DNA of 64,000 bases from Schizochytrium sp. TIO01 (Eukaryota > Protista > Bigyra: Labyrinthulomycetes): positions 496,001-560,000 of the forward strand of contig SMSO01000033.1 in NCBI GenBank assembly GCA_004764695.1, read 5' to 3'. Positions within the stretch are counted from its first letter, which is position 1. Every line of letters begins with the position of its first letter. The notes under the pieces were generated by a model that saw nothing but the letters and a program-made list of their open reading frames with translations, was not told the origin of the DNA and searched no databases. The translations under genes and the position numbers were made by a program. Below are positions 36,057 to 62,044 of this stretch, one piece after another.

Positions 36057-36518
36057 ATGACTAAATTTATCAACCTTGTCACTATGTTTGTCCTCCTTAG
36101 CGTCATGTGCATGCACTTATCTGAAGCCGCTCCTACCGAAGACAAAAACCGCGGGCTGCTAAGAGGTCGTAAGCACCCGCGGCGCCTCAGTTGGGATAGC
36201 TTTGTCAAGAGCATCGAGAAAGACGCCAAGACAGTTGTTGATGACGTTGAAAGTGTTACGGAAGAAGGCTATTGTGAAGTCATTAAGCTTGCAGCGAAAG
36301 CGCTCGTCTCTGAAGACATTACAACCGACTCTGGCTGTGCTTTACTCGGCACGAAGGCTGTTCTTGAGTGTGAAACTGCTGGGGATGGTCCTGAAGACCC
36401 GGTTGCTGACCTCTGTGCTGCGGCAATTTCGGGCACAGGTGTTGCTGCTTGTGAAAGTGCCATATCCAACGGTGGTACCTTTGATGCTGCTAGTCTTGAG
36501 AGTGATTGTGGCTGCTAA
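36057..36518 (+). CDS. Secreted acidic Cys-rich prepropeptide, copy 4 (older paralog)
   Basis: 153 aa, all 7 mature Cys and the RGLLRG..RRL motif conserved; many third-position differences from copies 1 and 2. Confidence 0.92.
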   Translation: MTKFINLVTMFVLLSVMCMHLSEAAPTEDKNRGLLRGRKHPRRLSWDSFVKSIEKDAKTVVDDVESVTEEGYCEVIKLAAKALVSEDITTDSGCALLGTKAVLECETAGDGPEDPVADLCAAAISGTGVAACESAISNGGTFDAASLESDCGC

Positions 36519-37340: not shown

Positions 37341-40082
37341 ATGGCTCGCAAGCGACTTTGTTGTCGCGTGAGGATCTGTCTCACAGGGCTTTTGTTGGCA
37401 CTATCAGCACTTTTGCTGGCCGCTAATGGAGTTGATGTATCCTCAGCTTCGTCGTCGTTGGCCTCAGAACAACTTGCTGCTCTGGATGCTGTACGAGGCG
37501 GAGCTCTTAAATCTTGGGCTCAGGGATCTGGCAAAGGGGGTTCGAAGGTTCTTGTGCTCGCTGGAGACACAGAATCGCATTATGCAGCGGTCCAAGGGGT
37601 CCTCCAAAAATGGAACTCCAGACTTGCCAAGCCAGCGAGCACACTCTTTGTGGTTGGTCGCTCCGAGGAATCCGGAGCCCTCCTGGATGAGGTCTCTACG
37701 TGGCTACGATCCAGAATCATTGGCGACTCACTCAAATGGTCTATAGTATTTGTCAAAGACGCTGATCAACAGAGTCTAGCAGATCTCAACGAGCTCGTGG
37801 AGGTCTTTGGCAACCGTAAATCGTGCACCGACGTAGAGAACGACCTGCACATTCCCGCTTGCGAGAAACTTCTTCTTGTTTTGAGCACCGGCCTTGGAGA
37901 AGAAATCGTTAAAAATTACCGGGACACTCTTTCCGAGGAGGTGAGTGATATTGCCCAGCGTATGGAGAGTGTTGCACGACGCCAACTTGATGACGAGTGT
38001 ACACGGGAGCTGCGAAAGCGTTGGGGAGGACAATCGTTACATGGTCTTGCGCGACTTCTCCGCGCAAACCTTAGGCAAGTCATATACCCAATATTTGGCA
38101 ATCCAAGCCTAACAGATGCGCAAGCACTTGTGAACTCCCAGGCAAAGCGCCGTGCAGAAGCTTCGAATCTAGCTTTGTCGAAACGGTCACAAAAAGAAAT
38201 AGACCTCAGCACATTTGAAAACCTTGATGAATGCATTGATGAGTCTATTATCAAACAGGCAGGGTTTGTTGGACAAACATATGTCCTTGATGCTGTAGAG
38301 AAGCTACTTAAACACATACGCCACGGTTGGCGTGCAGGAGACGGCCCAGTAGTGCTTCTGTTTGCGGGTCCACCTGGCCTTGGTAAAACGTTCCTCGCAA
38401 ATCTTGTCGCGAGAGCGTACAATTGTGGACAACAAAGGGCTTCTCTTGAGCGAGAACGCAAATATGTTCATATCGATATGGTAAACTATCAGGATGAACG
38501 TTCTGTTGACGGTTTTGTAGATCCCGCCCCTGGTCTTCAGGGCACGGGAATCTTAGCTGAGGTTTTCAAGGTATCTCAGCGCACTGTGGTTCTTTTAGAC
38601 GAAATTGAAAAATGCCACCCTAGTCTAGTGGAAAAGATGCTGCTTCCCATGCTAGACAACAATGGTGGGCATGTACAGTCAAAGAAAACAGGCGATAACT
38701 TTCCCACGCGAGATAGTGTCTTTATCATGACAACTAATTGCTTTAGTGAGGAAATTGAAGAGCTTTATAGCCAAATCATTGCAGGAAGTGCTCGTGGGCT
38801 ATCTGAGAATGTGTACGATGCACTCTCTGAGCAGGTGTCGGAGCTTATGCGTAATTCGAGTAGACAATGTCGCGGGGCACATTCGGGTAACTCCAATCCA
38901 TTCTCATCAGGCCCTTTTTGGCGTCGTTTAGTGGCAGGCTCAAGTTTGGCGACTCGGCATGGTGTGCTCCTGTTCGTACCACCATCTCCTGAGGATATAG
39001 ACGAACTTGTGTCTGTAACGTTGGAGTCTTACTCCACGCAGCTTCCAAACAAGGAAATATTTTATTCTCGACGTGCAGTGCAAGTTCTTCAGGACAAAGC
39101 ACGAGTTAGACTTCGCGCCGGAACTCTGACATCTGGCACTGTTCAGGCCTTTGTAACTTCTGAAGTGAAGGATGCTATACCTGAAGTCATTATGTTTTCT
39201 GACCACCGAAACATTCTGCTTTACCAATGCCCACATCACGGGTCACTTCGCGCCATGGTTGTTGACGCTGCCGAGTGCATCGATGAGTTATTTTCAGAGA
39301 GTCCAGAGGAACTCGCAGATCGTGTCGAGCTAGGCCGCCGAGATAAAATAAGCACTGAAAAGTTAGTATCTTCGGGAAAAAGGTTTTTTGGTGTGCCAAA
39401 GGAGAGCCGGAATTCTCCGAGCGCTACAACTTCTGGCAGTAGCAGCAAAGATCAAGATGACATAATGCTCGATATCGAGGTGCAGCAAGAGGCTAACTTC
39501 GTTCACAAAAACGAGGAGAAGGCGCACTCAATGTTTGATATCGAACAAATTCAAGCATATGCCATGCTCCTTTTATATTCCTTCGCAGTTATGGTTGCCA
39601 TGGCGTTATTCACTTCATACGCAGTACTTCCCGCTGCTAAAGCTCTATTTTCGGTTCTTGTTGTAGTGAGTTCTTTGCTTTGGTATTTTTTTCCAGAGCT
39701 CTTTTACATGCTTGTGCAATTGGTTTCCGAAGCTGCAATCTGGCTTTGGAACAACTGGCGTGTCGCACTACCAGTCGCTGGAGGTTTGTATATTTGGTGG
39801 GTGTTCCTGCAGAAAAGGCGACGCTCAAAGCTGGAGGAGGACAACAGAAGACTTCTTGCTGAGAATTTTGAGCTTCGCAAGGAGAACGAGAGTCTTCATT
39901 CGCAGGTGTCCTGCTTGAAGCTGCCACCAAAGCTTAGACCATCTGAAGAGAAAAGCAATGATTCGAAAGAGTTTCCAGGTACGACCGTCATCACTAGCCT
40001 TCATAGGACCGTGCGGCGTGGAATGAAGCGCTCGAAGAGTCTCGGGTATATTAATACTCATCTCGCGAGTGACAACGAATAA
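37341..40082 (+). CDS. Secretory-pathway torsin/ClpB-D2-like AAA+ ATPase with a degenerate N-terminal AAA-like module and C-terminal TM segments
   Basis: Signal-like N-terminus; FVGQ, Walker A GPPGLGKT, HIDM, Walker B VVLLDEIEK.HP, sensor-1 FIMTTN, FWRRL; 2-3 TM helices, then QKRRR and a coiled coil. Confidence 0.85.
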   Translation: MARKRLCCRVRICLTGLLLALSALLLAANGVDVSSASSSLASEQLAALDAVRGGALKSWAQGSGKGGSKVLVLAGDTESHYAAVQGVLQKWNSRLAKPASTLFVVGRSEESGALLDEVSTWLRSRIIGDSLKWSIVFVKDADQQSLADLNELVEVFGNRKSCTDVENDLHIPACEKLLLVLSTGLGEEIVKNYRDTLSEEVSDIAQRMESVARRQLDDECTRELRKRWGGQSLHGLARLLRANLRQVIYPIFGNPSLTDAQALVNSQAKRRAEASNLALSKRSQKEIDLSTFENLDECIDESIIKQAGFVGQTYVLDAVEKLLKHIRHGWRAGDGPVVLLFAGPPGLGKTFLANLVARAYNCGQQRASLERERKYVHIDMVNYQDERSVDGFVDPAPGLQGTGILAEVFKVSQRTVVLLDEIEKCHPSLVEKMLLPMLDNNGGHVQSKKTGDNFPTRDSVFIMTTNCFSEEIEELYSQIIAGSARGLSENVYDALSEQVSELMRNSSRQCRGAHSGNSNPFSSGPFWRRLVAGSSLATRHGVLLFVPPSPEDIDELVSVTLESYSTQLPNKEIFYSRRAVQVLQDKARVRLRAGTLTSGTVQAFVTSEVKDAIPEVIMFSDHRNILLYQCPHHGSLRAMVVDAAECIDELFSESPEELADRVELGRRDKISTEKLVSSGKRFFGVPKESRNSPSATTSGSSSKDQDDIMLDIEVQQEANFVHKNEEKAHSMFDIEQIQAYAMLLLYSFAVMVAMALFTSYAVLPAAKALFSVLVVVSSLLWYFFPELFYMLVQLVSEAAIWLWNNWRVALPVAGGLYIWWVFLQKRRRSKLEEDNRRLLAENFELRKENESLHSQVSCLKLPPKLRPSEEKSNDSKEFPGTTVITSLHRTVRRGMKRSKSLGYINTHLASDNE

Positions 40083-40315
40083 ATGGAAGTTTGAATTTAT
40101 TTTTTATTGTGTGTAGAATTGATAATGGAGCGGCCAACAACCTCAAAGTGATAAAGATATTTTTTCAAAATGATCGAAGAAGTCTATATTCTTTTATTTT
40201 ATCTTATTTTATTTTAAATTGAGCAATTTTGGTCTCTGTATGTAATAAATGGCGACTCACAGGTCTTATATTTGCACTAGTGGTTGATGATACTATCGTT
40301 ATATTGTGTAATCCT

Positions 40316-41608
40316 CTAAATCACTTCCAGAGTTGTCCGAAGGGTATCTCCAGGAATAACTCGAATCTCGATATCCTCGCTAGAGTACTTGGAGCTTGCG
40401 CTTTCTTTGAACTTGACAAGTCGCTTCTCAATGGGCATGGGCCTCTGCACACTACGTTTCAAACTTTCGTAGAGCTCTTCAGTAAGTGCGCGGGCATCTT
40501 TAACGCTGGTCTTATCATGCAGGTGGTCTAGGATTTCCTGTTTGACATGCTCTGGGCAACGCACAATACCATCCCAACGGCGTGGTTTTTCACCTTCCTC
40601 GAGCAAGTTATTGAGATTCTTGTCAATGCGATGCTTTATCTGCCGAGCCACCCGAATAACGATCTGGTCAACAATCTTGAGAAGCTCAAGGTTGGTCAGC
40701 GGTGTGAAAGGAATATGTGTAACGACACTAGGGATGAAGGAATCGGCTCCCCAATAGTCCTCAATCGCCTGTTGTACAGTGTCTACAGCGCTTTGGTAAG
40801 TTTGAGAGGGATCGAGAAGAAGGCCGAACTCGCGCAAGTCCGTGGTCAGTACAATCAAGCTCTGTTTGGCGGAGATGGCATCACCCTTGTCCGGATGGCT
40901 GAAGACACCCTTCGTGAGTAAGTCCTTAAGCATGGACACGCAAGACCCTTTGCAATACACAAAATCGTCAAGTACAAGCACAACCCTGGGTTCGTCCTCA
41001 AGCACCTGTGCCGCTTTTCTCAAAAAGCTGCGCAAGATACCCTCATTCTGCGCATCGGGGGTTGAGCTGCCTTCCTGCGGCTCTGCAAATGTTGCAGTTA
41101 CGATTCCGCATGCTTGACGCCAGTCCTCAAGCTTTGCTGAGTCTTCTGTGCAAGACCTCGTCAGTAGCGGCTTGACAGGGTCCATGGAGCCTACGGATGG
41201 TGCGAGTGCCGTGCTATGAAGCCAGGAGCCAAGTTTACGCATGGCGTTGGTCAAGTGGCCTTTAATAAGATTAGAGGTGGAAATGCAGTCATCGTAAATG
41301 GAGTTTGCAATCAATTCTGCCATAAAGGTCTTGCCTGTGCCAGACGGGCCCACCAGCTGCAGCACCACAGGCCTCTCCTTGGTGTCCACCCCGTGCACGA
41401 AATCTTGGAGATGCTCACGAATCATGCGAACCGCGTGAGATTGGCCAACAAAATCATGCTCGACGCGAGCGTTAAAGGTTGAGATGACATCATTATCGAA
41501 GCGTCGGTTTGGACATAACCCAAGCGCGACAGAAGTATGTGTCACCACCAACGCCAGGAGCGCCAAGGTCACCAGCCCAAACCTTGAAGCGAAGAAACCG
41601 CCGCCCAT
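40316..41608 (-). CDS. Torsin-like AAA+ ATPase with signal peptide
   Basis: Signal peptide; FVGQSHAV, PVVLQLVGPSGTGKTFMAELIA, LVLDDF, SLIVLTTD, IPFTPL. Confidence 0.85.
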   Translation of the reverse strand: MGGGFFASRFGLVTLALLALVVTHTSVALGLCPNRRFDNDVISTFNARVEHDFVGQSHAVRMIREHLQDFVHGVDTKERPVVLQLVGPSGTGKTFMAELIANSIYDDCISTSNLIKGHLTNAMRKLGSWLHSTALAPSVGSMDPVKPLLTRSCTEDSAKLEDWRQACGIVTATFAEPQEGSSTPDAQNEGILRSFLRKAAQVLEDEPRVVLVLDDFVYCKGSCVSMLKDLLTKGVFSHPDKGDAISAKQSLIVLTTDLREFGLLLDPSQTYQSAVDTVQQAIEDYWGADSFIPSVVTHIPFTPLTNLELLKIVDQIVIRVARQIKHRIDKNLNNLLEEGEKPRRWDGIVRCPEHVKQEILDHLHDKTSVKDARALTEELYESLKRSVQRPMPIEKRLVKFKESASSKYSSEDIEIRVIPGDTLRTTLEVI

Positions 41609-43248
41609 CGCGAGAGGAAGTCAAGTTCTCTAGACCCCAGCCTCGAGAGGGCTCAGAAACGCACGAGGTTGAGACTGACTTGGAGCGAAACGAGAGCAAG
41701 CTAGGTTTATAAGTCTTGGGCGCCAAGAGACTTTGCCGCAATGTCTAATCAACGAGTTTTGGAGAATACTTTCTTTTGTAGATAAAACAGACAAAAAATT
41801 AATTAATAAGAATATCAACTTTCCAACTGATTTTTATCCATTTCCTTTGAAAGTATTCATTTTCTTGCAAAAAAAAAAGAGCATCTTTCTCGGGCTTTCA
41901 CTCAAGTAGAAAGCTTTTGCTCTTCTCCATATGATCGAGACATTGAAATCCAAAGAAAGCCACGCCATATGTTGCATGTCGCCTCCTTCTCGCTCCATAT
42001 GCGTATAATGTCCCATCATAATTCAACGACAAAGGTCGAAGGCGAAATATTTCTAACAGAGAGCATGGAAACCATCGTCATTGCTTTAGTATCAGGTTCT
42101 GGCGATGGCTTTCTAGCCCTGGCGTACTCTCGAAAGATTCCTGAAGAAGTTGACGTTCTGCGCTTTAGTAGCGTTTGTGTAGCTCACTTCTGTTTAACTC
42201 CTCCTTTGAATATCTTCATTGGAACTTAACGTCAAAGCAAGGGACTACATCAACTGTTTTCACTGTTTCTAATTCTCAATGCTCCTTACGAACCTCCGGA
42301 TGACATCAATAATGGTAGGCACTGAGGCTGCAGTTTGTTTTATGGAGTGATTTGCGTTATAGGAGAACGAACATTCATGATATGGCAAAAATAAATGATC
42401 TCAGGTAAACGGATGAAATGACGGATGCAATTAAGACTCATATATAAGAGTGGGAACATAGCCAATTCTCGAAGTTGACACGTCATACGGTTCTCTGAGA
42501 ACCCGTCGGTGTCAAGATGACAAGAAAGGACATACTAACTCGTGAAGCTCAGTTGGAGTGAACAATAACTAATGATAACCACTAATATTCTTGAGCTCCC
42601 ACGAGTATCATCAATCAAATCATATATTTATTATTATTATTTATTTATTTATTTCCTTTTCATGATTGCCGGTGACAAAATAAAGCCTTAATTCTTTAGT
42701 TCATACGCGTAAAATAGGAATGTTTGCTTCAATCGTATACGAGCTACTCGTGATCAGCATAAAAAACCATGGTAAAACCCTTGACCAACTTATGTACCTG
42801 TTATACGCTCCCATTGAAGCTTTTGTTATTGTTGCGCCCGTAGTTATATAGCATCTTTGCCTTTTAACCTGTTTTTTCTCTCTAGAGTGTACAGGATCTT
42901 TAAAACATATCCTGATTGATTGATTGGCTATTTTTTAATCTTAAAATTAAATCCCTTTTGCTTTCTGCTATGCTTCGGTCCTTCAGTCAGAGGGAAAACT
43001 GTGACCTCTGACGGCTGGAGGATTGCAACAAAGCGGGCCACAACTTCCACAGAAAGCTCGTTAGCCTCGGTTCGAAGTACCTTAGCTTGGTGTTTATTCC
43101 TCGGACGGACGGCTTCGTCACAGCTTGAGAACGTTAATTGGTGGATTGGATAGCTCACTGCCATCGACCGTTCGCATAAGCACTAGTTTGGATCCAGGGC
43201 TCTGCGGCGGGGAGAGCCACCTTGAACGACGGAGCACAATCAACAAAA

Positions 43249-44469
43249 ATGCCGAAAGATATTCTCGATGAGTTTATGGGGAGAAAAATGTTAGATCGAC
43301 ATAGGGAAAGCCATAAGGAAGAGATTTTCGAAAAATACACCAAACATTACCCAGGTGAGGAAAAGCCAAGTACGATTGAAGATTGCATCAATCGTCTTAA
43401 AAAGAAGGAACCTAATTCATATGAGAAATTGGAACAGGCCTTTGAGGATAAGGATAAGACAAAAAACAAAAGAAAAAAGAAGACAAGATCACCTGCATCG
43501 TCCCCATCTTCTCGCAATTCTCCCACAGAAAATGAGCAGATAAGCAGCAATGCAGATTCTGAAGATGCTGATATCAACAAAGTCGTGGAGGAGAGTCCAA
43601 AGGAATTAGACTCCACAATTATTTCTGCAGAGGCTGAGAACGAAAAGGATGACAAGCATCGAGAGAAATTTGTTGTGTCCGTCTTAACGCTTCTGATTGT
43701 AGCTACTGCCATTGGTTTTGCAATGTGGGGAAACGCGGGGTTTCCCTACTCTGAAAATGACTTACAACCTGAAAGTTTGCAACGCTCAATGTGTCGTGAA
43801 GAGGCTGTTCAAAGAATTCCAGAAGCAGTCCAACATGTGATTGAATTAACTGGTGAAATCGACTCTGGAGAGGGCAGCTTATCAGACTCATTAGAGGAGT
43901 TCGCTGAAGCGTTGCTGTTTGATTGGACAGATTTTGATGACTCAGACTTTCCACCAAGGCATGCTGTTTCGATACGGCTACAAAGCAATAATGCAGACGC
44001 TCTCAGTGTAACTTTCTCAATGTTCCTAAATGACCTGTTCACCCCCGAATGCCGGGCGCAACATGTATTAGAGGTTGATGTTGGAGCTGCACAGAGTGTT
44101 AACTTGGTCACACTTGCAAACAATTTTATGCTAGAACGTAAGCAAGCTTGCGAAGAGAATATCGCTTTAGTGGTTTTCAACAATGTAAGCACGAAGGAGT
44201 CTAGCCATCATATCATGAGTTTCAAGGACCACCTCGACCGACCAGAGATCATTGTTTCGTTTGATCCCGAGAAAAAAATTTCATCGAGAGGAGTAGGATT
44301 TGTCTTTCTTGGGGCTTCACTTCCGGATGGTGAAGCATGTACAAAGGGCTCCATCGAGTACCATGACCAAAAGCTTGCGTGGTATAGAAATATGCAAGGT
44401 CGTGTTACCTTACGGGCTCGACTCTGTGCGCCATCCCAAGATCAAGTTGAAGACCCGAGCTCTCTTTAA
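43249..44469 (+). CDS. Type II single-pass membrane protein, putative LAP1/LULL1-like (degenerate AAA-like luminal domain)
   Basis: 406 aa from the first ATG. Charged N-terminus with KNKRKKKTR, one TM (FVVSVLTLLIVATAIGFAMWG), alternating alpha/beta C-terminal domain without a P-loop. The CDS is secure; the family call is tentative. Confidence 0.6.
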   Translation: MPKDILDEFMGRKMLDRHRESHKEEIFEKYTKHYPGEEKPSTIEDCINRLKKKEPNSYEKLEQAFEDKDKTKNKRKKKTRSPASSPSSRNSPTENEQISSNADSEDADINKVVEESPKELDSTIISAEAENEKDDKHREKFVVSVLTLLIVATAIGFAMWGNAGFPYSENDLQPESLQRSMCREEAVQRIPEAVQHVIELTGEIDSGEGSLSDSLEEFAEALLFDWTDFDDSDFPPRHAVSIRLQSNNADALSVTFSMFLNDLFTPECRAQHVLEVDVGAAQSVNLVTLANNFMLERKQACEENIALVVFNNVSTKESSHHIMSFKDHLDRPEIIVSFDPEKKISSRGVGFVFLGASLPDGEACTKGSIEYHDQKLAWYRNMQGRVTLRARLCAPSQDQVEDPSSL

Positions 44470-44977: not shown

Positions 44978-46411
44978 ATGGCTCGAAAGAAGCGTCGCTC
45001 ACGCGCAAAAGCAGCGTCCTCTACATCATCGTCACGATTGCCAAGCGGAGGAAGCGTGGGAAGCGGAGGTTTGAGCGATACCAAATTGAGTTTATGGGCA
45101 CAGCAAAGCTTTGCATTTTGGAGCTCTGAGAATTCTATCAAGGGCGCCAAGGATATCAAATTGGCGGCAATTGAAGCTGCTGTGGATAAGGGAAATGTGG
45201 TCCGCGTGGCAGAAATGTGTGCTGAGCGGGGTGGTCTACAAAGTGATTTTATTCGTAGGAAGGCATGGCCTCTTCTTCTAGAGGCCGGAGGAACCGACCC
45301 GGAAGAGGAGGCTGCAAAATCACCAAAAAGAGGTACACCTCGCGCACAATTATTGCATGAATTCCACATGGATATTGAACGCAGTATGTTCCACTTTAGC
45401 TGTGACAAATCGCTACCCAGGGACCTTAGGGTGCTCAAAAGGGAGGCACTCACGGCAATCATCCTGTACGTGCTCAAAGTCGACGCAAGATTACATTATT
45501 ATCAGGGTTTCCATGACGTCGCCACAGTGCATCTCCATGTATCAGGTAACGATATTCGAAAAGCTTCAAGGACAGTGCTGGCAGCAAGTAGGTTACAATT
45601 TGTAGATCATCATCAAAGGGACTTTGGTACTACAATTCAGGTCATGAACCTTTTGCCGTTGATCATACAACACTTCGATCAAAAAGTAGGAGCCACGCTT
45701 CTTCAGGCTGAGGTTGGACCAATGTTCGCTCTCGCGTGGGTTCTCACAGGGTTTGCGCACTCCGTAGACGACCTCGATGTGACCTCGCGTCTCTATGACA
45801 TCATACTGGCAAGTCATCCGCTGCTGTGTCTTTATCTAGCAGCAGCATTAGTGCTTCGTCCTACCACACGAGCACGCCTACTTAAGGTTGCTGAGGAAGA
45901 TTGCAGCATGCCCACAATTCACCATTTTCTACAAAACATCCCACCTCCAACAGCACCCTTGACTGCGAAGAACTCTTGGGCTAAGAGGAATGAGAAATAT
46001 GAAAAAGTGCGCAAGCGTATTGCAGATCGTCTCGCCAGCTCAGGAATGCCAGTCTCAGGCGCTATGTATTGCCCAGAAACCAGACATGAGGAGGAGGAAA
46101 ATTGTGTCGATAATCTTGTTGAGTCTGCCCTTGTAATGATGGCAAGATTACCTCCCTCAAAGCTTGTTAGATTGGGCGAGCGCCAGGACAACCCTATCAT
46201 AATCCCTAAAGAGTCGTCAGCTCGTCTCCCAATGGACACGAGGCCTGCTTGGCAGGCAACTATGCGATGGGGTACACGTCGCTCGCGTGCTCTTCGTTGG
46301 CCAAACTGGGCAATAAGCCACCCCGCAGCTACTACAGCTGTAACTGTAGCAGCAATGGCCATGATGATCGTATTTGTTTGGACCCCTCATGAAACGAAAG
46401 GATTTATGTAA
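44978..46411 (+). CDS. TBC-domain Rab GTPase-activating protein, TBC1D20/Gyp8-like
   Basis: IRRKAWPLLL, DIERS (R finger), LHYYQGFHD (Q finger), FALAWVLTGFAH, RLYD..LASHPL, C-terminal TM anchor. Confidence 0.92.
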   Translation: MARKKRRSRAKAASSTSSSRLPSGGSVGSGGLSDTKLSLWAQQSFAFWSSENSIKGAKDIKLAAIEAAVDKGNVVRVAEMCAERGGLQSDFIRRKAWPLLLEAGGTDPEEEAAKSPKRGTPRAQLLHEFHMDIERSMFHFSCDKSLPRDLRVLKREALTAIILYVLKVDARLHYYQGFHDVATVHLHVSGNDIRKASRTVLAASRLQFVDHHQRDFGTTIQVMNLLPLIIQHFDQKVGATLLQAEVGPMFALAWVLTGFAHSVDDLDVTSRLYDIILASHPLLCLYLAAALVLRPTTRARLLKVAEEDCSMPTIHHFLQNIPPPTAPLTAKNSWAKRNEKYEKVRKRIADRLASSGMPVSGAMYCPETRHEEEENCVDNLVESALVMMARLPPSKLVRLGERQDNPIIIPKESSARLPMDTRPAWQATMRWGTRRSRALRWPNWAISHPAATTAVTVAAMAMMIVFVWTPHETKGFM

Positions 46412-46683: not shown

Positions 46684-49600
46684 TTAGGTTTCGAGAGATA
46701 GAACAAGCGCTGCTCCACGCATGGTCCAATGCGAAGGACGATGTTCCTTTGATGGTAGTGAAATGTACATAACAAATTGCCGGCGGTCTGCATAGTGATA
46801 AAGTGGCGCTTCATATGGCCCAAAAGGACCATACTCTGCTCCATTCCTCTTTGAAGCTACTTTGTTGGCTGCAGTTATATGTAGCACAGGTAAGCTCACA
46901 GAAAGTATCTTCGGAGCAGCCTCTTCGAGAGTCTGTTCAGGAACATTCCAACCAGCGCCCTCCAAAAGAAGTCCATGAATATAAGCACCTTCTTTTGGTG
47001 CCGTGCGCACATGACTGGCCTCAGTAAAGCTTGTCACTTGAGTGACAAATTCTACGTTATCCAATGTCCAGAAATCTTCTGCATGTGCCCGCGTAACCTC
47101 TTGCTTGACAGCAGTTAAAAATGCTTGTGGTCTTGCAAAACCTCCAATCCACATACACGCTGGAGCACCCTGCTCGAGCCAACCGATGAACTGTTCAACA
47201 CGATCTTGATACCCTGTAAGCCATCCATTTATGGTGGAGGCTCGCCAGCTTTGTCGTGCCCAACTTGATGGTACTTTTCCTAAGTAAATTGCATCATGGA
47301 TCTCTGATAATTCATCAGTCATGGACGCAAAGCCCTTCAACGCAGCGACTAACTCTCGGAGGGATGATGACACGAGAGACATGATAGCACGTATATGTGC
47401 AAGCTCTTGGGCAAGAACAACATTACGAGGAATGCTAAGCCCGCCCAGGCGCTCAATTTGTTCAAAGCTTGTAACCTCGGATGGGATCTTTGGCAGCTCT
47501 TCCAAAAGGTTTTCTGCCTTGCCTATCACCGCTGTCTCTGAAGTGACCTCTCCGCCTTCAGGGGGGGTCTTAGCAATGCTCTTTGGCTGCATAATCAATA
47601 TAGATTCCAAGAGTCCGCGGGATGATTGTGCAAGAGAACTCATCTGAGCGTTTGCATGAAGCCCAAGCAAGTCGGCAGGATCTTCACCCTCTGGAAATGA
47701 TGAAATCACAGTCATGTATTGCTCGAGCTCAGGATAGTCAGGCACATCATAAGCATAGATAGCACCACTGGACAAGCTTCGTACTTGACCTAAGCTAGCA
47801 CCTGGATTAAGCATAGTCTGCTGTAAGTAGAACTCTGTGAAAGCTCCCATAAGACGACGATCAACATCATCTGTCACAGAAGCCCCCATTTGCACCTCAG
47901 ATACCATAAATTGAATTGCTGGCCATGAGACCTCGGTGTTGCTGAATAGATGCCGCTCTATAAACGAAAGCGATGCTTGTAGATCTCCAACAGTAAACTG
48001 GTAAGGGATAGTCCAGCCAATTGGGCCGACACGGCGCCGCTCTTGAACTACAGCATGCATAAAGCATGTGATGTACAGCATTTTACGCCATACATCAGAC
48101 TCAACTCGCTCAATGCGCTCCTGATCTACAAGCTCAGCATAATAACGAGCCATCGAGGCTTTAACACCTGCTGGAGGCTCGTTTGTGACCTTTAGAGACC
48201 TTTGAAGCAAAGATGCAGGAAACTGCTCGTGTGGTTCTGTGGTAATAAATAAGCGAAACTTTGAGTTCACGGCGAGACGGTCTTCCGGATTGGTGCTATC
48301 TGTATTCGAAGCATTTGTTGAAAATGCCCCTCCTGCAACTGCTGCTCCAGAAACGGTGCTCCCAGAATTATGAGTCTCGGACGCTGTGCCATCTTCATCT
48401 TGTGCCTGGCCTACCATTGCGTTTTCTACCTTCTCGAGAATTCCGTTCAAAGCTTCCATGAACGGAAGATCAAGATGTCCATTCTGCAACAGAACCCAGT
48501 CTCCATGAGCAATTGCGGTACCTAAAGCCTTAAGTGCAACAGGCCCTTGACTTGCGCCCATTGAAACACATGTTAGACGCTGCTTACGGCGCTTACAGAA
48601 AGACTCCAGAGCTTCAGTAGGATCACCGCCCGTGCTGAGCAAATACATCACAGGGATGTGAGCATCTGTTTGTCTGAAAATACTATCCATTGTAACATTT
48701 GGATTCCGAATATAAGCTGGTCCCAAGAAGGGGTGAAGGTGTCCATGAGACTCAATCGTCTCACTCTTGGCAACAAAATTGCGTGCAGCCAAAGCGAAGC
48801 GATCTTCTCGCAGTGCGCGAACAAGAAGCAGCCTATAAAAGTCGCCAACCATATCTGCAGCAAGCTTACTCTCATAGTCCGGGATTTGAACTTGCTCAGG
48901 ATGATCACTTTCCCACCATCGGTGCCATAAAGACTCTTTCTCGACTAAATGAGTGGGCAATGAAGAGAAGAAAGGTACAGACTTTGCTAGTGCTAAGGCA
49001 TTAAAATAACCACTCTCTGGGAGCCACGCCATTGGCTTGGGAGGTACGCTTGACGTTTCAATGTCAGCTGATCCTCGTAAAAGTACGTCAAGCATCTCGT
49101 TTTGAATAACCCCGCGGTTTACCAAGCAGCGTAAGCAAACAATTAGCACAAATACAAGCTTGTCCTTTTTGAAGAGGCCCTGGCTTACGTACCGGAAAAC
49201 GGAAATCGTCAACATATGAATGATTGAAGAAACCCGTCGAACAATTGTGTTATGCCTCTCTGCAATATCCATTGCAAACTTGAATAACGTAATGAACTGC
49301 TCAAGCCCTGTTTGGTACATAGGGTTCAAAGAACTCATAGCCACAATACTAAAATATAATGCAGTACCACGTGCCGCAACAGCCCTGTACTGTTCACGTT
49401 TTTCGTAAATTGAAACACGCGTCTCTGCAGCTGTTTGGAGCTTCTCTTTGACTTCTGTTGCAGCCCTTTTTGTACCAGCCAAGACGGATACCAAAGCGTC
49501 ATCATCAAGAAGATTTCCACTACTCTCCGTAAGACGCTCCAAAAGTTCATCGTTCAACATGTGAAGTCTGCGTGTGTTATTCGTGACTGATGACAATACC

Positions 49601-52600
49601 TCTGAAAGCTGTTCCTCCAGAGCACGTTGTTCTTTTTGGATAACTTGTCCTAACAATTGATCTTCGAGCCCTTCCATGGTTACTGTAAAATCAATTACAG
49701 TAGTTTTCGCTTGAAGTTCAGGCGCAAAGCTACCACGCGCAAGATTTGTAATCAAAAATAATGAAAACCCTGCGTCATAATCTACTGGTTTGTCTGATAT
49801 AACAATATAATTCGCTCGTGCACGTGAGATGATCAATTTGTCTAGAACAGGATCTAGTATTGGATCTACATCTTCCTGCACGTCTGTGACAACAAGACTG
49901 TATCCCTTCGACAAACAAAACTCTAACTGCTCACGGAATCGTGGATGTTGCATGGTTGTTGTACCGAAAGATGGCAGGCGTGAAGCTTCGCGCTTACGAA
50001 TCCATTGTAAAGCTTGACCCTGAGGGTCAATGAGCAGGGGATACCTCATGCTTTGTGTTACCAAAACTCCATTCTCTGTAGAAAGAGCGTCCATGGGTAA
50101 ACCCTGAGAACCAAAGTCAGCTATTGTGACAGGATCTGTGAGAAAGGCTAACAAATCAAACCTGTTGGCGTTTGAGTCTATTGTCACAGGAACCTTGCGC
50201 TTGAGGAGATCAGGCACGAAACACTGCTGCGTAAGTGTGACACGAAATTCCTGATTGAAAGCACCACAATAGGATAGAAACGCACTTGCTACAGCACAAT
50301 CACCCACAAGTCGTTTCTTTGACTCTGCGAAAGCTTGAGCATCCTGACCCCAGCGCTCACGCTCATCCTTGAGTCCTTCTATTAGTGCAGTAGCTTTATC
50401 CATTCGTGCGCGACTCCGTCGAGTGCCATCTTCGATTTCCTGTTTCTCTGCCATTTGTGCCTGAAAACGCTCTTGAAGTTCTTCTAGTTTATTCTTGCAA
50501 CCCTGCAACTTTTTTTCTGCATCTGCAAGTTCTCCAAGAGCAGCCTCCAGCTTTGCCTCTGCAAGGCCAAGCTTTTCGAGTTTCGGTTTAACAACCTTTG
50601 ATGCGCTATGATATTTGACCATTGCAATGACCCACGCGCAGAGGCCTTCACACGCCTTACTTGCGTTGCGCGCAACCACAGGAGAGAAGCCATCGAGCTC
50701 GAGATAAGGCATTAGCAACTCAATAGTCTCGTCATTGATATTATCTTTCTCCTCCGCTGAGAACCGAAACAGACTCTTCAGGAAACTAGAATCTGCAAGC
50801 ATAGTTTTTTGACAAAGAGTATAAGAGTCTTGTACGAAACGAATCTCTTTTTTGTCTTTTCCAATACCAATATTGACCTTACCCAATGTCACAGGCTTGA
50901 GCTTGAACATGCGAAGAATCATAACTCCATCAAAGGTCAGCTTGATAATGTCTCCCGGCTTGGGAAGCTTTTTAAGTTCGTTCAAATCACCAGGTTTAAT
51001 GGAGTTCACAGCCTGCTCAGCTTCATCAAGAAATGGCTGGGCTGCTTTTAAGTCCTCTTCAGCAGCATTCTTTTCTTCAGTGATCAAAGCAGCTTCCGCC
51101 TCGCAGGCGAGTTTGATTCTGCTCACAGAATCTGCTTCTTTTTTAGCCTGTAAAGAAGACTGTTCCAATGAACTAATCATATTATTGCAGGCTTGTTCTG
51201 CTGCACGAAGTTTAACTTCCTCTTGAGCTAGCACAACCTTGAGTTGCTCAACATCGCTTGCTCCAGTAGCTAATTTCTGTAAGCCTATCTCCATACGCTT
51301 CTCCTTATGGATTAGTTCGTCAAGTCGAAGCGAGTACATACCTTTGAATTGATCTAAATAAGACAAAAAGGATTTTGGTGTCATATGAATGCTGGCACAA
51401 AGTTGATCATTATAGCGACGAGCTTGCTGTTCCGCAAGCGAATGAATTGCACCTGTATGCGCAATTAAAGAAGCACGAACAGCATCGCTACAAGTCATTT
51501 CGAACTCTAGGAGATGTTGTTCAGCTACGGCTTGTAATGCTTCCATGGGCCACGGAAGGAACCAATCAATGTACGACTCTGTGAAGATAGAAGGGAACTG
51601 ACGTGCTCTTTCGTTGTATCGTGGATGAACAGGAGACATACACAGGATTAAGTGTAGATTATTCCGAATCGAATCCACAAAGAACCTTGTGAGGTTTTCT
51701 GGAGTATCAACAAAGCCTGGTTGTTCTTTCACAGCGATAGCCCGAGCATCAGAAGCCATAACCGCGAGTTCATCTTTGGGGAATAGAGAAACAATTTCAC
51801 CACTCGCGAGGAATGAGTTAAATATCTCAAGAAAAGACTCTTCGCGAATCTCAGATTCTGTCACGAGAAAAACCACAGATTTTCGCTCTTTGCCTATAAC
51901 ACGGTACAAGGTGCGCATGTCTTCCATAAGAGCGTTGCGATTATAGGCTTTGCTGAGTCTGATTTGAAACAGATCGTGCTGAGCAATGTAGGTAGCAAGT
52001 TTTGCAATGCTTTGTTTGCCAGAACCACCAACGCCTACCAACAACAAATTTCCACGGGGCAGGCCAAGAACTCGCACCGCCCGAAGTAAATGAGCAAGAG
52101 CATCACGAAACAAAACAAGGTTCATTGCCTTCTCTGGGTTTTCCTCATTGTGAATCTCGAGAAATTCAGATACCCGCTCGAGTACAGCATTCATCGAGCT
52201 TGCAGGCTCATAAATCTGGGGCGCAGGCGCAATAATAACTCCATCTTCATCATATTCAGGATCGCGTAGGAAATTGACGAACTGAACAAGCTCTTTTTCT
52301 TTTGACGCAGCGGACGAAGATGAGGATTTGCTAGGGGTGTCACCATCTTTTTTACTTGACTTTTTCCCACCAGAAGATGAAGCTGATGACGAAGAAGAGG
52401 CTGTATTGCTAACTCCTGATGGCGGGGGTGCTGCTGCGGCTGGTGAGTAATAACATTGTGATGCTGTATCTTTACCCAGCTCTTTCAAGGTCACTTCATC
52501 CGCAATGCCACGCATCTTCACCTTATCTGCATCACAGGTGAGTTTATCGGCAAACACTCGCTCTACCTCATGCCGCCAGGCTTTGTAAATTGTTTTTTCT

Positions 52601-55600
52601 CCGCACTCAATGTAAACTTGGAAAGGAACGCGAAAAACTCCTTGAAAGACGCGACTAAGATCACGAAGCGTAAAGAAATAGTGAGACTTCGAAGGTGTCG
52701 GCAAGAGAACAGCCCTGATTTTACTCCACACGTTGATGGATGCGGGAACAAGTTTATTCGCCATGTTAGTTAGTTTTGTAAGTACTGAGGGATCGATCTC
52801 GCTCGATACTGTTGATGCACAAGCGAAATACCGCTTCACCATGGTTGAATAGATCTCAGTCAGGCTATTTTGATCAGGTAGAGGAACATTCAAAACGAAA
52901 AAGTGTCGCAAAAGACGTGCTGGAACACCCAATTTGGTGACTGAATCGTCCACTTCTGGTGAAGAGGTATCGTCCGACGAAGAAGAGCTAGAGTCTCTCA
53001 TTGAGTGTACTCTTGTCATTGCAGCCATGAATTGAACGTCTTCAATTGTCTTGAAATCACCACGTTTGTCCTTATCAAGAAATGCAAGACTATGAGTCTC
53101 AATTAACTGCCTAGCAAGTTCAAGCGTAGGTTGATCGCCCCACTCGTTGGCCATCGGAAGAGAGAGATCATCAAGAAAGATTGTCATATGCTGACCGTTG
53201 CTTGGACCATATGTCTTTCCACCTCGTTTATCTACCTCACCCTCCACAGCTTCCTGCAGCATACGAGGTGTTGATGAATAGCTAAGTTTGACTGTTTTGA
53301 AAAGCATCGAATCATCTGCTCTCTGAAGAGAGTCTGCAAACATTCGGGCAAGCGTCGATTTTCCAGTTCCTGCTTCTCCAACTAACAATAGTGGCTTTTT
53401 GCGTGCCTCCATTTGACCTAGAACGTAGAGAGATCGAACAGTTTCGGAAGTAGGAATTTGTAACTGAGCAAACCCATTCCGAAAGCGTGACACATGATCT
53501 TTTGGTCCGGACGGATTCCATTGAGGCAGATCCCAAGATGTCCAGTTCGTTTCTGGGAAAGCCAAGCGATAATTAAAGCATGTATCATCTGGATTTGCTT
53601 GATTTGGTAGGACCTCGGAAGAATCAATTGATCGTAAAAGCTTATCAAACTTTCGACGATCCGCTGATTCAATGAGAGCACCAAAAGTCCAAATAAACGC
53701 AAATATAAAAATGCGCTCAAGTTCTTGTTCTGCATCACTAGGTGAATCCGAAAGCTTTGCCTCTGCAATGAAACCTTCCATCAGCTCAAAGGTAGATGTT
53801 ATGAGGGAAGCTCTAGGCCTTGGCAATGCTTTTGGAAACAGCCGAATAAATCCTTGAAAAAAGTCGCAAGTTTGAATCCAACGACCAAAAAGATCACGTA
53901 GGATTGGTCTGTATGCTTCTTGTTGCTTTGATATCCAGCTCTCTAGTACGGGCTGCCAATCTAGATCAGTTTCACTAACAAAAATAATACCTGCTCTTGA
54001 TACAGTTGCTGGTGAAGCATTATCAAGACTCTCTGTTTCAAAGAAAAGCTTCACATTGTCAGACATGGAAATTCGCTCTCCATTTGCAAGAGTTAGAATT
54101 TTGTTATCATCTAGCACAGTGTTCAGGTTTTCTACCCAAAGAGCATCAACAGGACCATCACATATGAGCCAGGTGCGATCCCGACGAGTGCGATCATTGT
54201 GCTTCGCCCAAAGCGTTGCAAACACACCATCGACCCATTCTTGGCTTATAGGATCACATTCGCCAAACATCTCTTGTGCTCGAATGGCTTTGGGGTTCAT
54301 ACGCACAAGCTTTGTTGGCACTGCGTTGACTCTTGTCAACGTCTCTGCAAGAGTTTCCATACAGGCAGACTTGCCAGAGGCTGCTGGGCCTAAAACAATA
54401 ATCCCATGACGGACAAGTACAGTTTCGTGAACTTGGTGGACTTTCCGTACCCAAGAAGGATGCGGTTGCAAGTCATTTTCCGCAAGAACCTGAGTAAGAG
54501 TATTGTCAAGATCTTGGGAGCTCTCTTGGCGACCAATTTCAGCAACTTTTGTATGCATAAGACCAGGAAATAAGTCTTCAATTAGCGACAGAAACAATGG
54601 AACATCTGGGGCAACTAGCTTACTGAGGTTCATATCTCGCAAGGCTAGCATAAGTAGGGTGTGCTCATCTTTGTCTTGGTGATCACGCTTTGTCTTTCCT
54701 GCAGTGCGAAGGACACTCAATATATTCCGAAGGCCAAAGTCATAGTGCTGCTGGGCGCTAAGTTGCTCCTCGCAGCAACGGTAAAGTGTATTGAACTTTT
54801 TGGCTAGCTCAGTAAACTTGGTATACCCTACACTACATAACTTGACTCGAATAATAATCTCTCGATCCGGAACCATCATAGCAACGCTTCGGAAAAGAGC
54901 TTTAAGGTTTTCAGGAAGCTCTTGTCTACCCGCGTAACCAGGATTCATGGTAATAAATGTTCCAACAGAGTGCTTAATACTGATCGAATCTGCATCACCT
55001 GGGAATGTGAGGGTTGCGCTCTGCATGCGTTTTGCGTTGGTGATTGCTAGGACTTGCTGCGCAACAACAGAGAGAACTGGCAATTCGATACGGTTAAACT
55101 CATCAAAACAGCCCCAAATACCAGCACGACACAAACCCTTAAAGATTTTCGCCAAATCAGTATGACGCTGCTGGTCAGAACAATTAATCACCACTACATA
55201 AGTACCTAAAGAACGACCAAGATCCTTGACTGTCTCTGTCTTTCCTGTTCCTGCTGGACCAGCTGGAGCTCCACCAAGATTCATCCCCAAGGCTTGTGTT
55301 AAGCTTATGTAACACCTATCAGTGAGCGGTGTAATGACCAAGCGCTCTTTGCAGCCTAGGTATTCATAAGAGTAGTCAAAGTCCATGTCACAAACAGAGA
55401 CCGTGCACGCTCCGGCTCCGCCAATTCCATCGGTTCCCGAATTCGTCCAATAGAAACGCGCCTGCTTCATCCAGTCAAAATCATTAGGCGATGAAATCCG
55501 ACGGTCTTTGAACATGCGGAAGATATCAGCTGTTACGTCTCGCTGATGAACCTGAATAGTTACAAGAGTTTCAATCTTTTTACGATTCATTGCAGAGCCT

Positions 55601-61365: not shown

Positions 61366-62044
61366 CGCGGCTGACGTATACCCACCTAAAGAACTCCACA
61401 CAAAATCGAACCAATGCGCAGGCCCCCACTGCTCCTTGATATGTCTTCGAACCTTTCAAACTGCTCTAGCAGCAGGCCTCTGCCTGGACCACTGCCCGCA
61501 CGAGCGCTTCGGCGTCTAATCCCTCCAAAATCCCTTCGTGTGCTCAGGCAATAAATTCCAAGGTGTTGTGGTCATAAAAACCTGCATTTCAACATCTTAT
61601 CCAAAAACAAAAATATGAAAAATAATTAGCTACTCCAATCTCGTAGGACCTTCTAAGGGCATCGGTTCTGCTAGTCCCAAAACGACTCTGCGGAAATTGT
61701 CAACGGTCAAATCAGTAAGTAAGGACTACTAGTACTAAAGTGCTTGGAGTAGCAGGTCGAATGTAATTAAGCTCCCAGAGTATGAACAACAAAGAAAGCG
61801 CCGGGTATATTTTTTTCGGGTATGTATTAGCCTCTCCCTTGCTTATGGGAGGGGTTTAGGTAGGCCATGGGGTATTAGCTACAGCTGGCTGTACAGGGGG
61901 GCTCTTGGATAGATGCAGGCAGGTTGGGAGCGCTTGCGAGACTGAAGCTGGTAAACTTACAGTGTAGAAGACTGTGACAGCAACAGCGAAGGGGACGATA
62001 GTCCAGGAAAGGGAAAGGGGAAAGCTAGGGAGGCAAGCATAAAG

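Follow-up and report, generated by a model that had tools for sequence, protein, structure and literature searches.

Given that two AAA+ proteins with signal-like N-termini and a single-pass membrane protein are encoded side by side on contig SMSO01000033.1 of Schizochytrium sp. TIO01 (assembly GCA_004764695.1), we wondered whether this labyrinthulomycete locus specifies a luminal ATPase and a membrane-bound activator comparable to animal torsins and LAP1/LULL1, or whether the resemblance has another explanation. The locus covers positions 37341-44469 of the window, that is, of the whole 64,000-nt stretch of DNA that was analysed.

Gene layout and linkage in Hondaea

The ORF list contains three adjacent, intron-free genes at this place (G1, G2 and G3; Table 1), as the original prediction had it. 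G1 and G2 converge, their stops lying 233 bp apart, and G2 and G3 are divergent. The 1.64-kb spacer between the latter two, a possible shared promoter region, contains neither an ORF longer than 86 aa nor an Rfam family, and its only repeats are short chance ones. The description of the cluster as "operon-like" was not borne out: the cluster is conserved but is no operon, each of its eukaryotic genes being transcribed separately. In Hondaea fermentalgiana, the one other genome covered by the synteny comparison, the orthologues bear the consecutive accessions GBG28855 (G1), GBG28856 (G3) and GBG28857 (G2), and for each of them the record gives a contig of 490,680 bp. Synteny is thus conserved at protein identities of only 44-53% (46% for G1 with GBG28855.1, 53% for G2 with GBG28857.1 and 44% for G3 with GBG28856.1). 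Judged from accession order, the gene order differs between the two organisms in a way that fits a single inversion of the G2-G3 pair.

Table 1. Features of the locus, in window coordinates
Feature	Position	Strand	Basis
G1	37341..40082; ORF open from 37329	+	913 aa from ATG; ORF list
G1 signal peptide or signal anchor, residues 1-28, MARKRLCCRVRICLTGLLLALSALLLAA	37341..37424	+	hydropathy, translation checked
G1 AAA+ domain, residues 300-640	38238..39260	+	family alignment A3, MAFFT with bacterial ClpB D2, Skd3 alignment
G1 Walker A GPPGLGKT	38367-38390	+	alignments, coordinates checked
G1 Walker B VVLLDEIE, canonical	38586-38609	+	alignments, coordinates checked
G1 C-terminal hydrophobic cluster, residues 739-827, ends QKRR	39555..39821	+	hydropathy
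G1 extraluminal tail, residues 828-913, coiled-coil-like, pI 9.5	39822..40079	+	weak coiled-coil Pfam matches, computed pI
G2	40316..41608	-	430 aa; ORF list
G2 Ser294 at arginine-finger position	40727..40729	-	HMMER, MAFFT, invariant in alignment A2
G2 Walker B VLVLDDFVY, D214 D215	40955..40981	-	invariant in A2; aligned to ClpB LLDEVEK
G2 Walker A GPSGTGKT, canonical GKT	41327..41350	-	invariant in A2, coordinates checked
G2 signal peptide, residues 1-30, ends VALG	41519..41608	-	hydropathy, translation checked
G2-G3 spacer	41609..43248	.	1.64 kb, between divergent genes
G3	43249..44469; ORF open from 43222	+	406 aa from ATG; ORF list
G3 transmembrane segment, residues 141-161	43669..43731	+	hydropathy 2.5; model helix pLDDT 93
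G3 luminal pseudo-AAA+ domain, residues 175-395	43771..44433	+	AlphaFold2, Foldseek, column statistics
G3 P-loop position, reads SNNAD	43963-44004	+	column statistics
G3 Walker-B position, reads VVFNN	44161-44190	+	column statistics
G3 Cys364, likely disulfide partner	44338..44340	+	31/32 members
G3 Arg385, candidate trans-acting arginine finger	44401..44403	+	32/32 homologues, only invariant column
G3 Cys393, at or near C-terminus in most members	44425..44427	+	31/32 members

Two ClpB-D2-like proteins with different active sites

G1 comprises a signal-like N-terminus (mean Kyte-Doolittle 2.23 over residues 10-28, with orthologue N-termini alike), an N-domain, a ClpB-D2/Skd3-like AAA+ domain, a C-terminal transmembrane cluster and a basic coiled-coil tail. 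The AAA+ assignment originally made for this protein holds, with a Pfam AAA_2 match at 7.8e-21 and human CLPB/Skd3 as the best PDB sequence match (4e-19). Like ClpB/Skd3, G1 keeps Walker A and B, sensor 1 (the N within FIMTTNCF in the alignment) and conserved arginines, R529 (in FWRRL) being invariant in the finger region and R540 present in four of five members. In the same alignment the sensor-2 Arg of ClpB is lost, and the pore-loop position reads PGLQG, with an invariant Leu in place of Tyr. The hydrophobic cluster would correspond to about three transmembrane segments, a number and topology that we infer from hydropathy.

G2, the torsin-like component of the cluster, appears from its sequence to be a soluble luminal ClpB-D2-like AAA+ protein. 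As predicted, this domain lies behind a signal peptide (mean Kyte-Doolittle 2.0 over residues 4-29; orthologues P0005 and P0006 have signal-like N-termini), and G2 matches both Pfam Torsin (33.6 bits where 27 are required; N-terminal part only) and ClpB/Hsp104 D2. Its AAA domain is clearly homologous to that of G1 (hhalign 97.9%). In Walker B, Asp replaces the catalytic Glu and is followed by a conserved CxxxC; sensor 1 is Asp instead of Asn, and the sensor-2 Arg is kept. At the arginine-finger position, HMMER pairs DSFIPSVV of G2 with NEFINRIDEL of Hsp104, so that Ser294 lies opposite finger R757, in a column that is M in 6azy, the R328M/R757M mutant; MAFFT, run against ClpB, places Ser294 likewise. 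Across three homologues of 33-51% identity, seven cysteines are conserved. With its intact Walker A and sensor-2 Arg, G2 can, to judge from these motifs, bind ATP, and it may hydrolyse it very poorly owing to the Asp residues that stand for the catalytic Glu and the sensor-1 Asn. The proposal of two torsin-like ATPases without a finger thus survives for G2, with its invariant Ser294, but not for G1, with its conserved arginines and canonical Walker B.

G2 shares with the Torsin family (PF06309, 5J1S chain A) one ClpB-D2-like AAA+ domain preceded by a signal peptide, conserved cysteines, and the absence of both an arginine finger and, by alignment, an aromatic pore loop, and it passes the PF06309 gathering score. 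It departs from torsins in its Walker A, which reads GKT where theirs reads GKN (PMC7175109), in sensor II (Arg versus Gly-Cys-Lys), in the Walker B DD and the sensor-1 Asp, in an insertion of ~60 aa after the Walker A helix, and in the lid, which has a full ClpB-type look with C-terminal strands whereas that of torsin is a three-helix bundle. The family profile of G2 scores 62 bits to ClpB NBD2 versus 22 bits to TorsinA, and its AlphaFold2 model (core pLDDT 70-90) finds its best Foldseek matches in ClpC/Skd3/ClpB NBD2. The suggested torsin kinship is therefore backed by the Pfam match above cut-off, but the profile scores favour ClpB/ClpC D2 and neither GKN nor GCK is present. Both AAA+ domains have their nearest relatives, in sequence and in structure, in ClpB/Hsp104 NBD2 and mitochondrial CLPB/Skd3; unlike these proteins, G1 and G2 are built on one AAA+ tier, lack NBD1, the middle domain and ankyrin repeats, and carry a signal peptide and membrane anchors. 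Pfam ClpB_D2-small matches neither of them.

The G3 family and its pseudo-AAA+ domain

In G3, a hydrophilic N-terminus of 140 aa leads to one strong transmembrane segment, after which comes a C-terminal domain of 245 aa that has no P-loop; this agrees with the type II membrane protein originally proposed. Its family has at least 32 members, from labyrinthulomycetes and environmental eukaryotes; upstream of the domain, one strong transmembrane segment is present in each of the 24 full-length members that were examined, and the N-terminal regions form an acidic and a basic class. An NVS sequon is found in the luminal part of G3.

G3 matches no Pfam or PDB entry by sequence, and at this level it shows no homology to any AAA+ protein, LAP1 and its neighbours G1/G2 included (hhalign probabilities below 1%). 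AlphaFold2, using 32 homologues, models residues 175-395 with pLDDT >90 in the order b1-a1-b2-a2-b3-a3-hairpin-b4-helices-b5, the domain ending 8 residues past R385. Model and column statistics together reveal a pre-sensor-1 hairpin. P-loop, Walker B and lid are all missing, and the sites of the first two are variable and non-acidic across the 32 homologues. All listed top-50 Foldseek matches in the PDB are HCLR-clade (Clp-type) AAA+ proteins, so the AAA-like fold foreseen for this protein was recovered. E-values are 1.7e-5 for ClpB NBD2, 2.8e-5 for TorsinA (rank 4) and 3.3e-5 for LAP1 (rank 5), and are thus alike, all about 1e-5, for LAP1 and active Clp ATPases; among the matches listed, the LAP1 luminal domain (4tvs_B) has the highest target-normalised TM (0.57) and identity (14%). 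In the model, helix 380-385 ends in R385 and the last strand (388-392) follows directly, which places R385 at the topological position of the ClpB D2 finger. It would also be equivalent to LAP1 R563, going by secondary-structure position and not by superposition. Four cysteines are conserved in G3, of which Cys364 is the likely partner in a predicted disulfide.

LAP1 (TOR1AIP1) and LULL1 (TOR1AIP2; 4TVS, 5J1S chain B) have an AAA+-like fold that lacks Walker motifs and the small domain, together with a strictly conserved Arg and a disulfide at the C-terminus, and their C582 (LAP1) and C468 (LULL1) tether the C-terminus (PMC4358337, PMC4999309). G3 resembles them in its type II topology with a variable extraluminal N-terminus, acidic or basic across the family as in LULL1 and LAP1, in a luminal AAA+ large subdomain lacking Walker A/B and lid, in a single strictly conserved Arg near the C-terminus and in a conserved Cys at the extreme C-terminus. 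However, there is no detectable sequence similarity to LAP1 (LAP1_C, PF05609, matches none of the 32 family members); R385 is followed by a strand with the Cys 8 residues on, whereas R563 and C582 of LAP1 are 19 residues apart and joined by helices a5/a6; and LAP1/LULL1 belong to animals, where the G3 family does not occur. The label of LAP1/LULL1-type activator accordingly fits G3 in its fold and in the invariant Arg at the finger position, but not in sequence homology, and the likeness may reflect either common descent or convergence. By sequence, the cluster belongs to neither the torsin family (62 versus 22 bits for G2) nor the LAP1 family.

A proposed trans-arginine-finger mechanism and its alternatives

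Starting from what is directly supported, namely gene anatomy, motifs, the G3 fold, the invariance of R385 and the adjacent Hondaea orthologues (consecutive accessions), we propose that the locus encodes a secretory-pathway AAA+ system working by active-site complementation, as in Torsin-LAP1/LULL1, with a luminal AAA+ protein and a trans-arginine-finger activator; we give this reading slightly better than even chances. G2 would be the soluble ATPase that binds ATP, with no finger of its own (Ser294) and a weakened Walker B (DD), and G3 the membrane protein that has given up P-loop, Walker B and lid and kept R385. G3 would dock on the nucleotide face of G2 and insert R385, and this presumed activation would lead to hydrolysis or to disassembly at the membrane, thereby coupling an ATPase switch in the lumen to the N-terminal region of G3 outside it. 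The membrane-anchored, motif-complete paralogue G1, whose coiled-coil tail is extraluminal, probably takes part as well, as a motor or as a second client of G3. Its conserved arginines count against the proposed mechanism, in that the cluster could function without a trans finger.

It is unlikely, in our view, that the three proteins instead build a single heteromeric machine in the lumen, with G1 as its sole true motor and G2 and G3 as non-catalytic or regulatory subunits, R385 serving the ATP site of G1 or ATP-bound, non-hydrolysing G2 acting as an assembly switch. Such a machine would fit the complete Walker A/B and sensor 1 of G1, the catalytic residues of G2 that are degenerate in all three homologues, the linkage of the genes in two genomes and the homology of the G1 and G2 AAA domains. 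Yet the conserved arginines of G1 (R529, R540) leave it with no obvious need for a donor, and the one protein that specifically lacks a finger is G2, which is also divergently paired with G3. Less probable again is that G3 is a pseudo-AAA+ scaffold or receptor without a catalytic role, its Arg being structural or ligand-binding and the gene adjacency a matter of co-regulation or inherited synteny. In favour of this are the absence of any homology in sequence between G3 and LAP1 or the ATPases encoded next to it, a Foldseek likeness generic to Clp-type AAA+ domains, and synteny documented in only one other genome; but a structural role alone is hard to credit, because the sole invariant residue of 32 divergent homologues stands exactly at the finger position and the neighbour G2 has lost precisely that residue, and the genes are still adjacent at ~50% protein identity despite a rearranged local order.

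The ER or perinuclear lumen is the most likely site of the system. In G1, G2 and their orthologues, basic residues precede uninterrupted hydrophobic runs of 13-17 residues, a pattern that looks like that of an ER signal peptide or anchor, unlike an amphipathic presequence; together with the conserved luminal cysteines (seven in G2, four in G3), these long stretches agree with the ER-type targeting originally proposed. We regard it as improbable that the proteins work elsewhere, as a ClpB-type disaggregase and its membrane-bound accessory, in mitochondria or in a post-ER, secreted or ectoplasmic-net compartment: the closest solved relative of G1 is indeed mitochondrial CLPB/Skd3, and no KDEL-type retention signals were found in the cluster proteins, but against this stand the signal-peptide pattern, the cysteines and the absence from G1 of the pore-loop Tyr expected of a threading disaggregase.

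Under the proposed complementation of G2 by G3, the cluster may have a cellular role in membrane or nuclear-envelope remodelling. A protist locus would then follow the same principle as torsin and LAP1, the dystonia proteins of animals: an ATPase paired with a membrane-anchored "dead" ATPase that bears an invariant Arg, an arrangement which to our knowledge has so far been described only in animals.

Genomic setting and linkage of the three genes

The window consists of ordinary eukaryotic nuclear DNA, gene-dense and intron-poor; among its other genes are those for a dynein heavy chain, a Sec7-PH ArfGEF, a RabGAP-TBC protein and a patatin-like lipase. The 4,905-aa dynein heavy chain, with its one uninterrupted ORF, illustrates how few introns this genome has. 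The original prediction placed three consecutive genes at 37341-44469, and three uninterrupted ORFs were found there, coding for the ClpB-D2-type AAA+ proteins G1 and G2 and for the candidate activator G3. Its assignment of the host to a probable stramenopile was right as well, the closest named relatives of all three proteins being those of labyrinthulomycetes (Hondaea fermentalgiana, Mucochytrium quahogii and Aplanochytrium stocchinoi). G1 and G2 are convergent, with a stop-to-stop distance of 233 bp, and G2 and G3 are divergent, separated by a 1.64-kb spacer that was considered as the site of a further gene or RNA and contains nothing recognisable. The "operon-like" organization proposed at the outset had to be abandoned in the sense of an operon, since the genes lie on opposite strands and the host is eukaryotic.

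Features of the window, with positions in window coordinates
Feature	Position	Strand	Description
Small ORF	36057-36518	+	153 aa
G1	37341-40082	+	913 aa, uninterrupted ORF
G1 N-domain	37500-38210		residues ~55-290 of G1
G2	40316-41608	-	430 aa, uninterrupted ORF
G3	43249-44469	+	406 aa, uninterrupted ORF
Basic cluster of G3	43459-43494		KNKRKKKTR
RabGAP-TBC protein	44978-46411	+	477 aa
Dynein heavy chain	46684-61401	-	4,905 aa, one uninterrupted ORF
Large ORF	12163-16941	+	1,592 aa

The orthologues of all three proteins in H. fermentalgiana have consecutive accessions, GBG28855.1 (G1, 46% protein identity), GBG28856.1 (G3, 44%) and GBG28857.1 (G2, 53%), each recorded on a 490,680-bp contig. The gene order is thus 1-3-2 in Hondaea versus 1-2-3 in the window, as expected if the divergent G2-G3 pair had been inverted once. 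This synteny, read from consecutive GenBank accessions in one other genome, bears out the expectation of conserved synteny and led us to reject a chance adjacency of the three genes. Scans of metagenome contigs for further loci of this kind found no relatives.

Several neighbouring genes deserve mention in their own right. The RabGAP-TBC protein directly downstream of G3 (PF00566, 8.4e-14) has a hydrophobic C-terminal segment, a combination that we take to be the architecture of ER-anchored TBC1D20-type GAPs. Just upstream of G1, the small ORF starts with a signal-like sequence, contains several cysteines in the C-terminal portion and gave no match in a Pfam search; judging by these features it may encode a small secreted protein. 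The dynein heavy chain shows a weak match to the axonemal DYH2-5-8 coiled-coil family, which suggests a flagellar dynein, and the large ORF has no Pfam match at E<=1e-5.

Two ClpB-D2-type AAA+ proteins

Homologues of the three proteins were sought with full-length queries among proteins 0.55-1.75 times as long as the query, which for G1 and G2 covered relatives of the whole protein. The Pfam Torsin model (PF06309) matches G2 at 33.6 bits against a gathering score of 27, over residues 32-115 only, around the Walker A motif; the match recurs in the Hondaea orthologue and is absent from a third G2 homologue, P0006. The profile of this three-member family scores ClpB NBD2 at 61.9 bits over two stretches versus 21.8 bits for Torsin-1A, the latter in the Walker A region only. 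An AlphaFold2 model of G2 (core pLDDT 70-90) has ClpC D2, Skd3 and ClpB NBD2 as its best Foldseek matches, and TorsinA is not among the 50 matches listed. The N-terminus is signal-peptide-like in all three homologues, which share seven conserved cysteines, and G2 contains an insertion of ~60 residues following the Walker A helix. Its Walker A motif is GPSGTGKT (GKS in P0006), its Walker B motif VLVLDD has Asp in place of the catalytic Glu, and sensor 1 is Asp, while the sensor-2 Arg is kept in KDARAL, with R373 and A374 invariant. No GYVG-type motif is present at the pore-loop position in the alignment with ClpB. The HMMER alignment sets G2 'DSFIPSVVTHIPF' on Hsp104 'NEFINRIDELIVF', and the finger column of Hsp104 reads M in PDB 6azy, an R328M/R757M mutant; Ser294 of G2 therefore occupies the NBD2 arginine-finger position, that of Hsp104 R757. 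The MAFFT alignment with ClpB likewise places Ser294 there, and this Ser is invariant in the G2 family. As read from these alignments, G2 is a ClpB-D2-type AAA+ protein with a putative signal peptide, in which the arginine finger has been lost.

G1 matches Pfam AAA_2 (PF07724) at 7.8e-21, and its best solved relative is human mitochondrial CLPB/Skd3 (4e-19); a PDB search with the C-terminal half of its AAA domain returned nothing useful. Motifs were read from an alignment of the five-sequence G1 family and from an alignment with bacterial ClpB D2. Like ClpB, Hsp104 and Skd3, G1 has an AAA_2-type D2 with Walker A (GPPGLGKT), Walker B (LLDEIE), sensor 1 (Asn, in TTN) and conserved Arg in the finger region, where R529 (FWRRL) is invariant and R540 is found in 4/5 members, both being candidate fingers. 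The sensor-2 Arg is absent. Unlike these proteins, G1 carries a signal-like N-terminus (residues 10-28) and a C-terminal transmembrane cluster, seen in hydropathy as a hydrophobic region at 739-827 with about three spans that ends in QKRR and is followed by a basic coiled-coil tail, and it lacks the aromatic pore loop (GYVG) that serves substrate threading: the position is conserved, with PGLQG and an invariant Leu399 instead of Tyr. With this layout, the protein would be luminal up to residue 738 and extraluminal in its tail. The disaggregases are soluble proteins of the cytosol or mitochondria that have NBD1 plus a middle domain, or ankyrin repeats; none of these domains was found in G1 with Pfam. 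Its luminal N-domain shows a weak colinear alignment with the AAA cores of G3, G1 and G2 (hhalign E 0.01-0.07), in which 'SKVLVLAGDTESH' falls on b1/P-loop, 'WSIVFVKDA' on Walker B and 'LLLVLSTGLG' on sensor 1; R245 is invariant and lies just before a strand (LRQVIYPIF). It is tempting to speculate that this region may be a second, degenerate AAA-like domain, bearing an invariant Arg and fused to the active ATPase.

The prediction of two ClpB-D2-like AAA+ domains thus held for both proteins, whereas their designation as torsin-like held in part. G2 resembles torsins in being predicted luminal, finger-less and pore-loop-less and in scoring above the PF06309 gathering score. Torsins, in contrast, have a non-canonical Walker A, GxxxxGKN (PMC7175109), and a Gly-Cys-Lys sensor II with a conserved redox cysteine (PMC4999309), where G2 has GKT and KDARAL, and ClpB D2 is its closer relative in sequence. 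A tree combining the G1 and G2 families with 20 bacterial Clp D2 domains recovered both families as monophyletic, each on a very long stem; long branches dominate this tree, which comprises no torsin or Skd3 references and is silent on torsin kinship.

The G3 family and its predicted fold

Searches of Pfam, NCBIfam and PDB sequences gave no match to G3. A three-sequence profile, run in an exhaustive HMMER search, yielded 35 cluster representatives, 31 of which were aligned with the window protein (n=32). One strong transmembrane segment lies upstream of the conserved domain in all of the full-length members examined (24/24). G3 itself has no N-terminal signal peptide and a single transmembrane segment at 141-161 (hydropathy 2.5), with the Cys-bearing conserved domain C-terminal of it; this arrangement points to a type II orientation with a luminal C-terminal domain, the charge bias around the segment being weak. 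R385 is the sole invariant column of the alignment (32/32), followed by C364 and C393 (31/32 each), F351 (30/32), K326 (29/32) and W378 (28/32); further cysteines are C182 (19/21) and, just after helix a1, C268 (17/24).

The N-terminal regions of the family are mutually unrelated and bimodal in pI, either acidic (4.6-5.7) or basic (9.6-11.5), and thereby recall LULL1, which is acidic, and LAP1, which is basic. An extraluminal N-terminal motif, F.GR...R.F ... LC ... G ... DL.AHG, occurs in many members of the alignment (P0002, P0003, P0088, P0090-P0093, P0095) and is weakly recognisable in the window protein, whose basic cluster, followed by SP-rich sequence, resembles a nuclear-localisation signal. 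Asn runs and low-complexity sequence abound in two members, P0101 and P0112; their composition suggests a very AT-rich host, unlike labyrinthulomycetes, so that the family may reach beyond stramenopiles.

AlphaFold2, run on G3 with the 32-sequence alignment, gave pLDDT >90 for residues 175-395. The model comprises b1 (240-246), a1 (249-263), b2 (273-277), a2 (286-300), b3 (306-311), a3 (316-330), a two-strand hairpin (333-345), b4 (349-355), three short helices and b5 (388-392), after which comes C393. In topology the predicted domain is an AAA+ large subdomain, and its pre-sensor-1 hairpin is that of the HCLR clade; R385 is the last residue of the helix preceding the final strand, as in ClpB D2. 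Solely Clp-type AAA+ proteins are found among the top 50 Foldseek matches listed from the PDB, which agrees with the AAA-like fold foreseen for this protein. ClpB NBD2 is matched at 1.7e-5, TorsinA (5j1s_A) at rank 4 with 2.8e-5 and the LAP1 luminal domain (4tvs_B) at rank 5 with 3.3e-5, the last exceeding all other listed matches in both target-normalised TM (0.57) and identity (14%). The P-loop position (SNNAD) and the Walker-B position (FNN) are variable across the family and hold no nucleotide motif. There is no lid domain: the conserved domain ends at the final strand and C393, and most homologues end 0-5 residues past that Cys.

LAP1 and LULL1 are type II membrane proteins whose luminal AAA+ fold is closest to ClpB-D2 and lacks Walker A/B and the small domain; a strictly conserved Arg (LAP1 R563, LULL1 R449) completes the Torsin active site, and a conserved disulfide involving the penultimate residues (LAP1 C582, LULL1 C468) tethers the C-terminus to helix a1 (PMC4358337, PMC4999309). 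With its predicted type II topology, AAA+-like fold without Walker A/B, missing lid and strictly conserved Arg, G3 matches each property of LAP1/LULL1 that could be compared here. The position of R385 would be equivalent to that of LAP1 R563, a correspondence drawn from the topology of the model by way of ClpB rather than from superposition. At the sequence level, PF05609 (LAP1_C) has no match at E<=1 in G3 or any of the 32 family members, and neither phmmer nor a profile search links G3 to LAP1/LULL1 sequences of the PDB at E<=10. Comparison of the G3 family with the G1 and G2 families by hhalign gave nothing significant; its top alignment puts G3 'PRHAVSIRLQSNNAD' on G2 'ERPVVLQLVGPSGTG' with a probability of <1%. 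Since all sequence-only tests of G3 against AAA+ proteins and LAP1 failed, the claim of homology is one of predicted fold. By analogy, G3 would work like LAP1/LULL1, but its sequence does not belong to their family. Because of this, and because G2 fails the torsin motifs and is closer to ClpB D2, we do not regard G2 and G3 as orthologues of torsin and LAP1.

A possible membrane-anchored activation system and its evolution

Taken together, we infer a mechanism of active-site complementation in which G3 would contact G2 from its anchorage in the membrane of the ER or nucleus and present R385 to the ATP site of this finger-less partner. Presentation of R385 would control hydrolysis or nucleotide-dependent assembly at the membrane, with G1 as an associated membrane-bound motor. 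That G3 donates a finger in trans to a luminal AAA+ partner seems to us slightly more likely than not. The compartment is probably the lumen of the secretory pathway; mitochondrial presequences were considered and rejected, since the N-termini have long uninterrupted hydrophobic cores, and we regard it as very unlikely that the system acts in another compartment outside the ER. Two further readings give the proteins other roles. In one, G1, which retains the Walker motifs, is the real client or motor and G2, with its altered Walker B, is a regulatory subunit; this seems unlikely to us. In the other, G3 serves as a non-catalytic scaffold, which we consider more improbable still. Of these readings, we prefer finger donation by G3.

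Torsins have been described as the sole AAA+ ATPases of the lumen of the ER and nuclear envelope and as animal-restricted; according to the literature they occur in animals, whereas single-celled organisms, plants and fungi lack them. More than 25 years on, there is still debate over their substrate and molecular function. Our literature search found no paper joining torsin with stramenopiles or with choanoflagellates, and PF06309 matches in protists may already be in databases. For the G3 family there is neither a Pfam model nor any annotation, the named members being "hypothetical" or "uncharacterized". It is possible, though we hold it as a tentative view a little short of an even chance, that trans-arginine-finger activation of an ER-luminal AAA+ protein by a membrane-anchored pseudo-AAA+ protein is not an animal invention, with a linked pair in labyrinthulomycetes, a presence in the hosts of ~30 other G3-family members, and G3 as a previously unrecognised family. 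The relation of G2/G3 to Torsin-LAP1 can be read either as deep common ancestry or as convergence. Shared ancestry would push the system back towards the base of eukaryotes and entail massive loss; an independent origin from a ClpB-D2-type ancestor would be a striking molecular convergence.

If the activation model is true, a compact, linked ATPase and activator module in a unicellular organism would offer a simple model system, provided that the host is culturable and genetically tractable, and evolutionary comparison would point to the essential features of such systems: finger loss, a lid-less activator, conserved cysteines and a membrane tether. As a new protein family without a Pfam entry, G3 can be searched for across eukaryotes.
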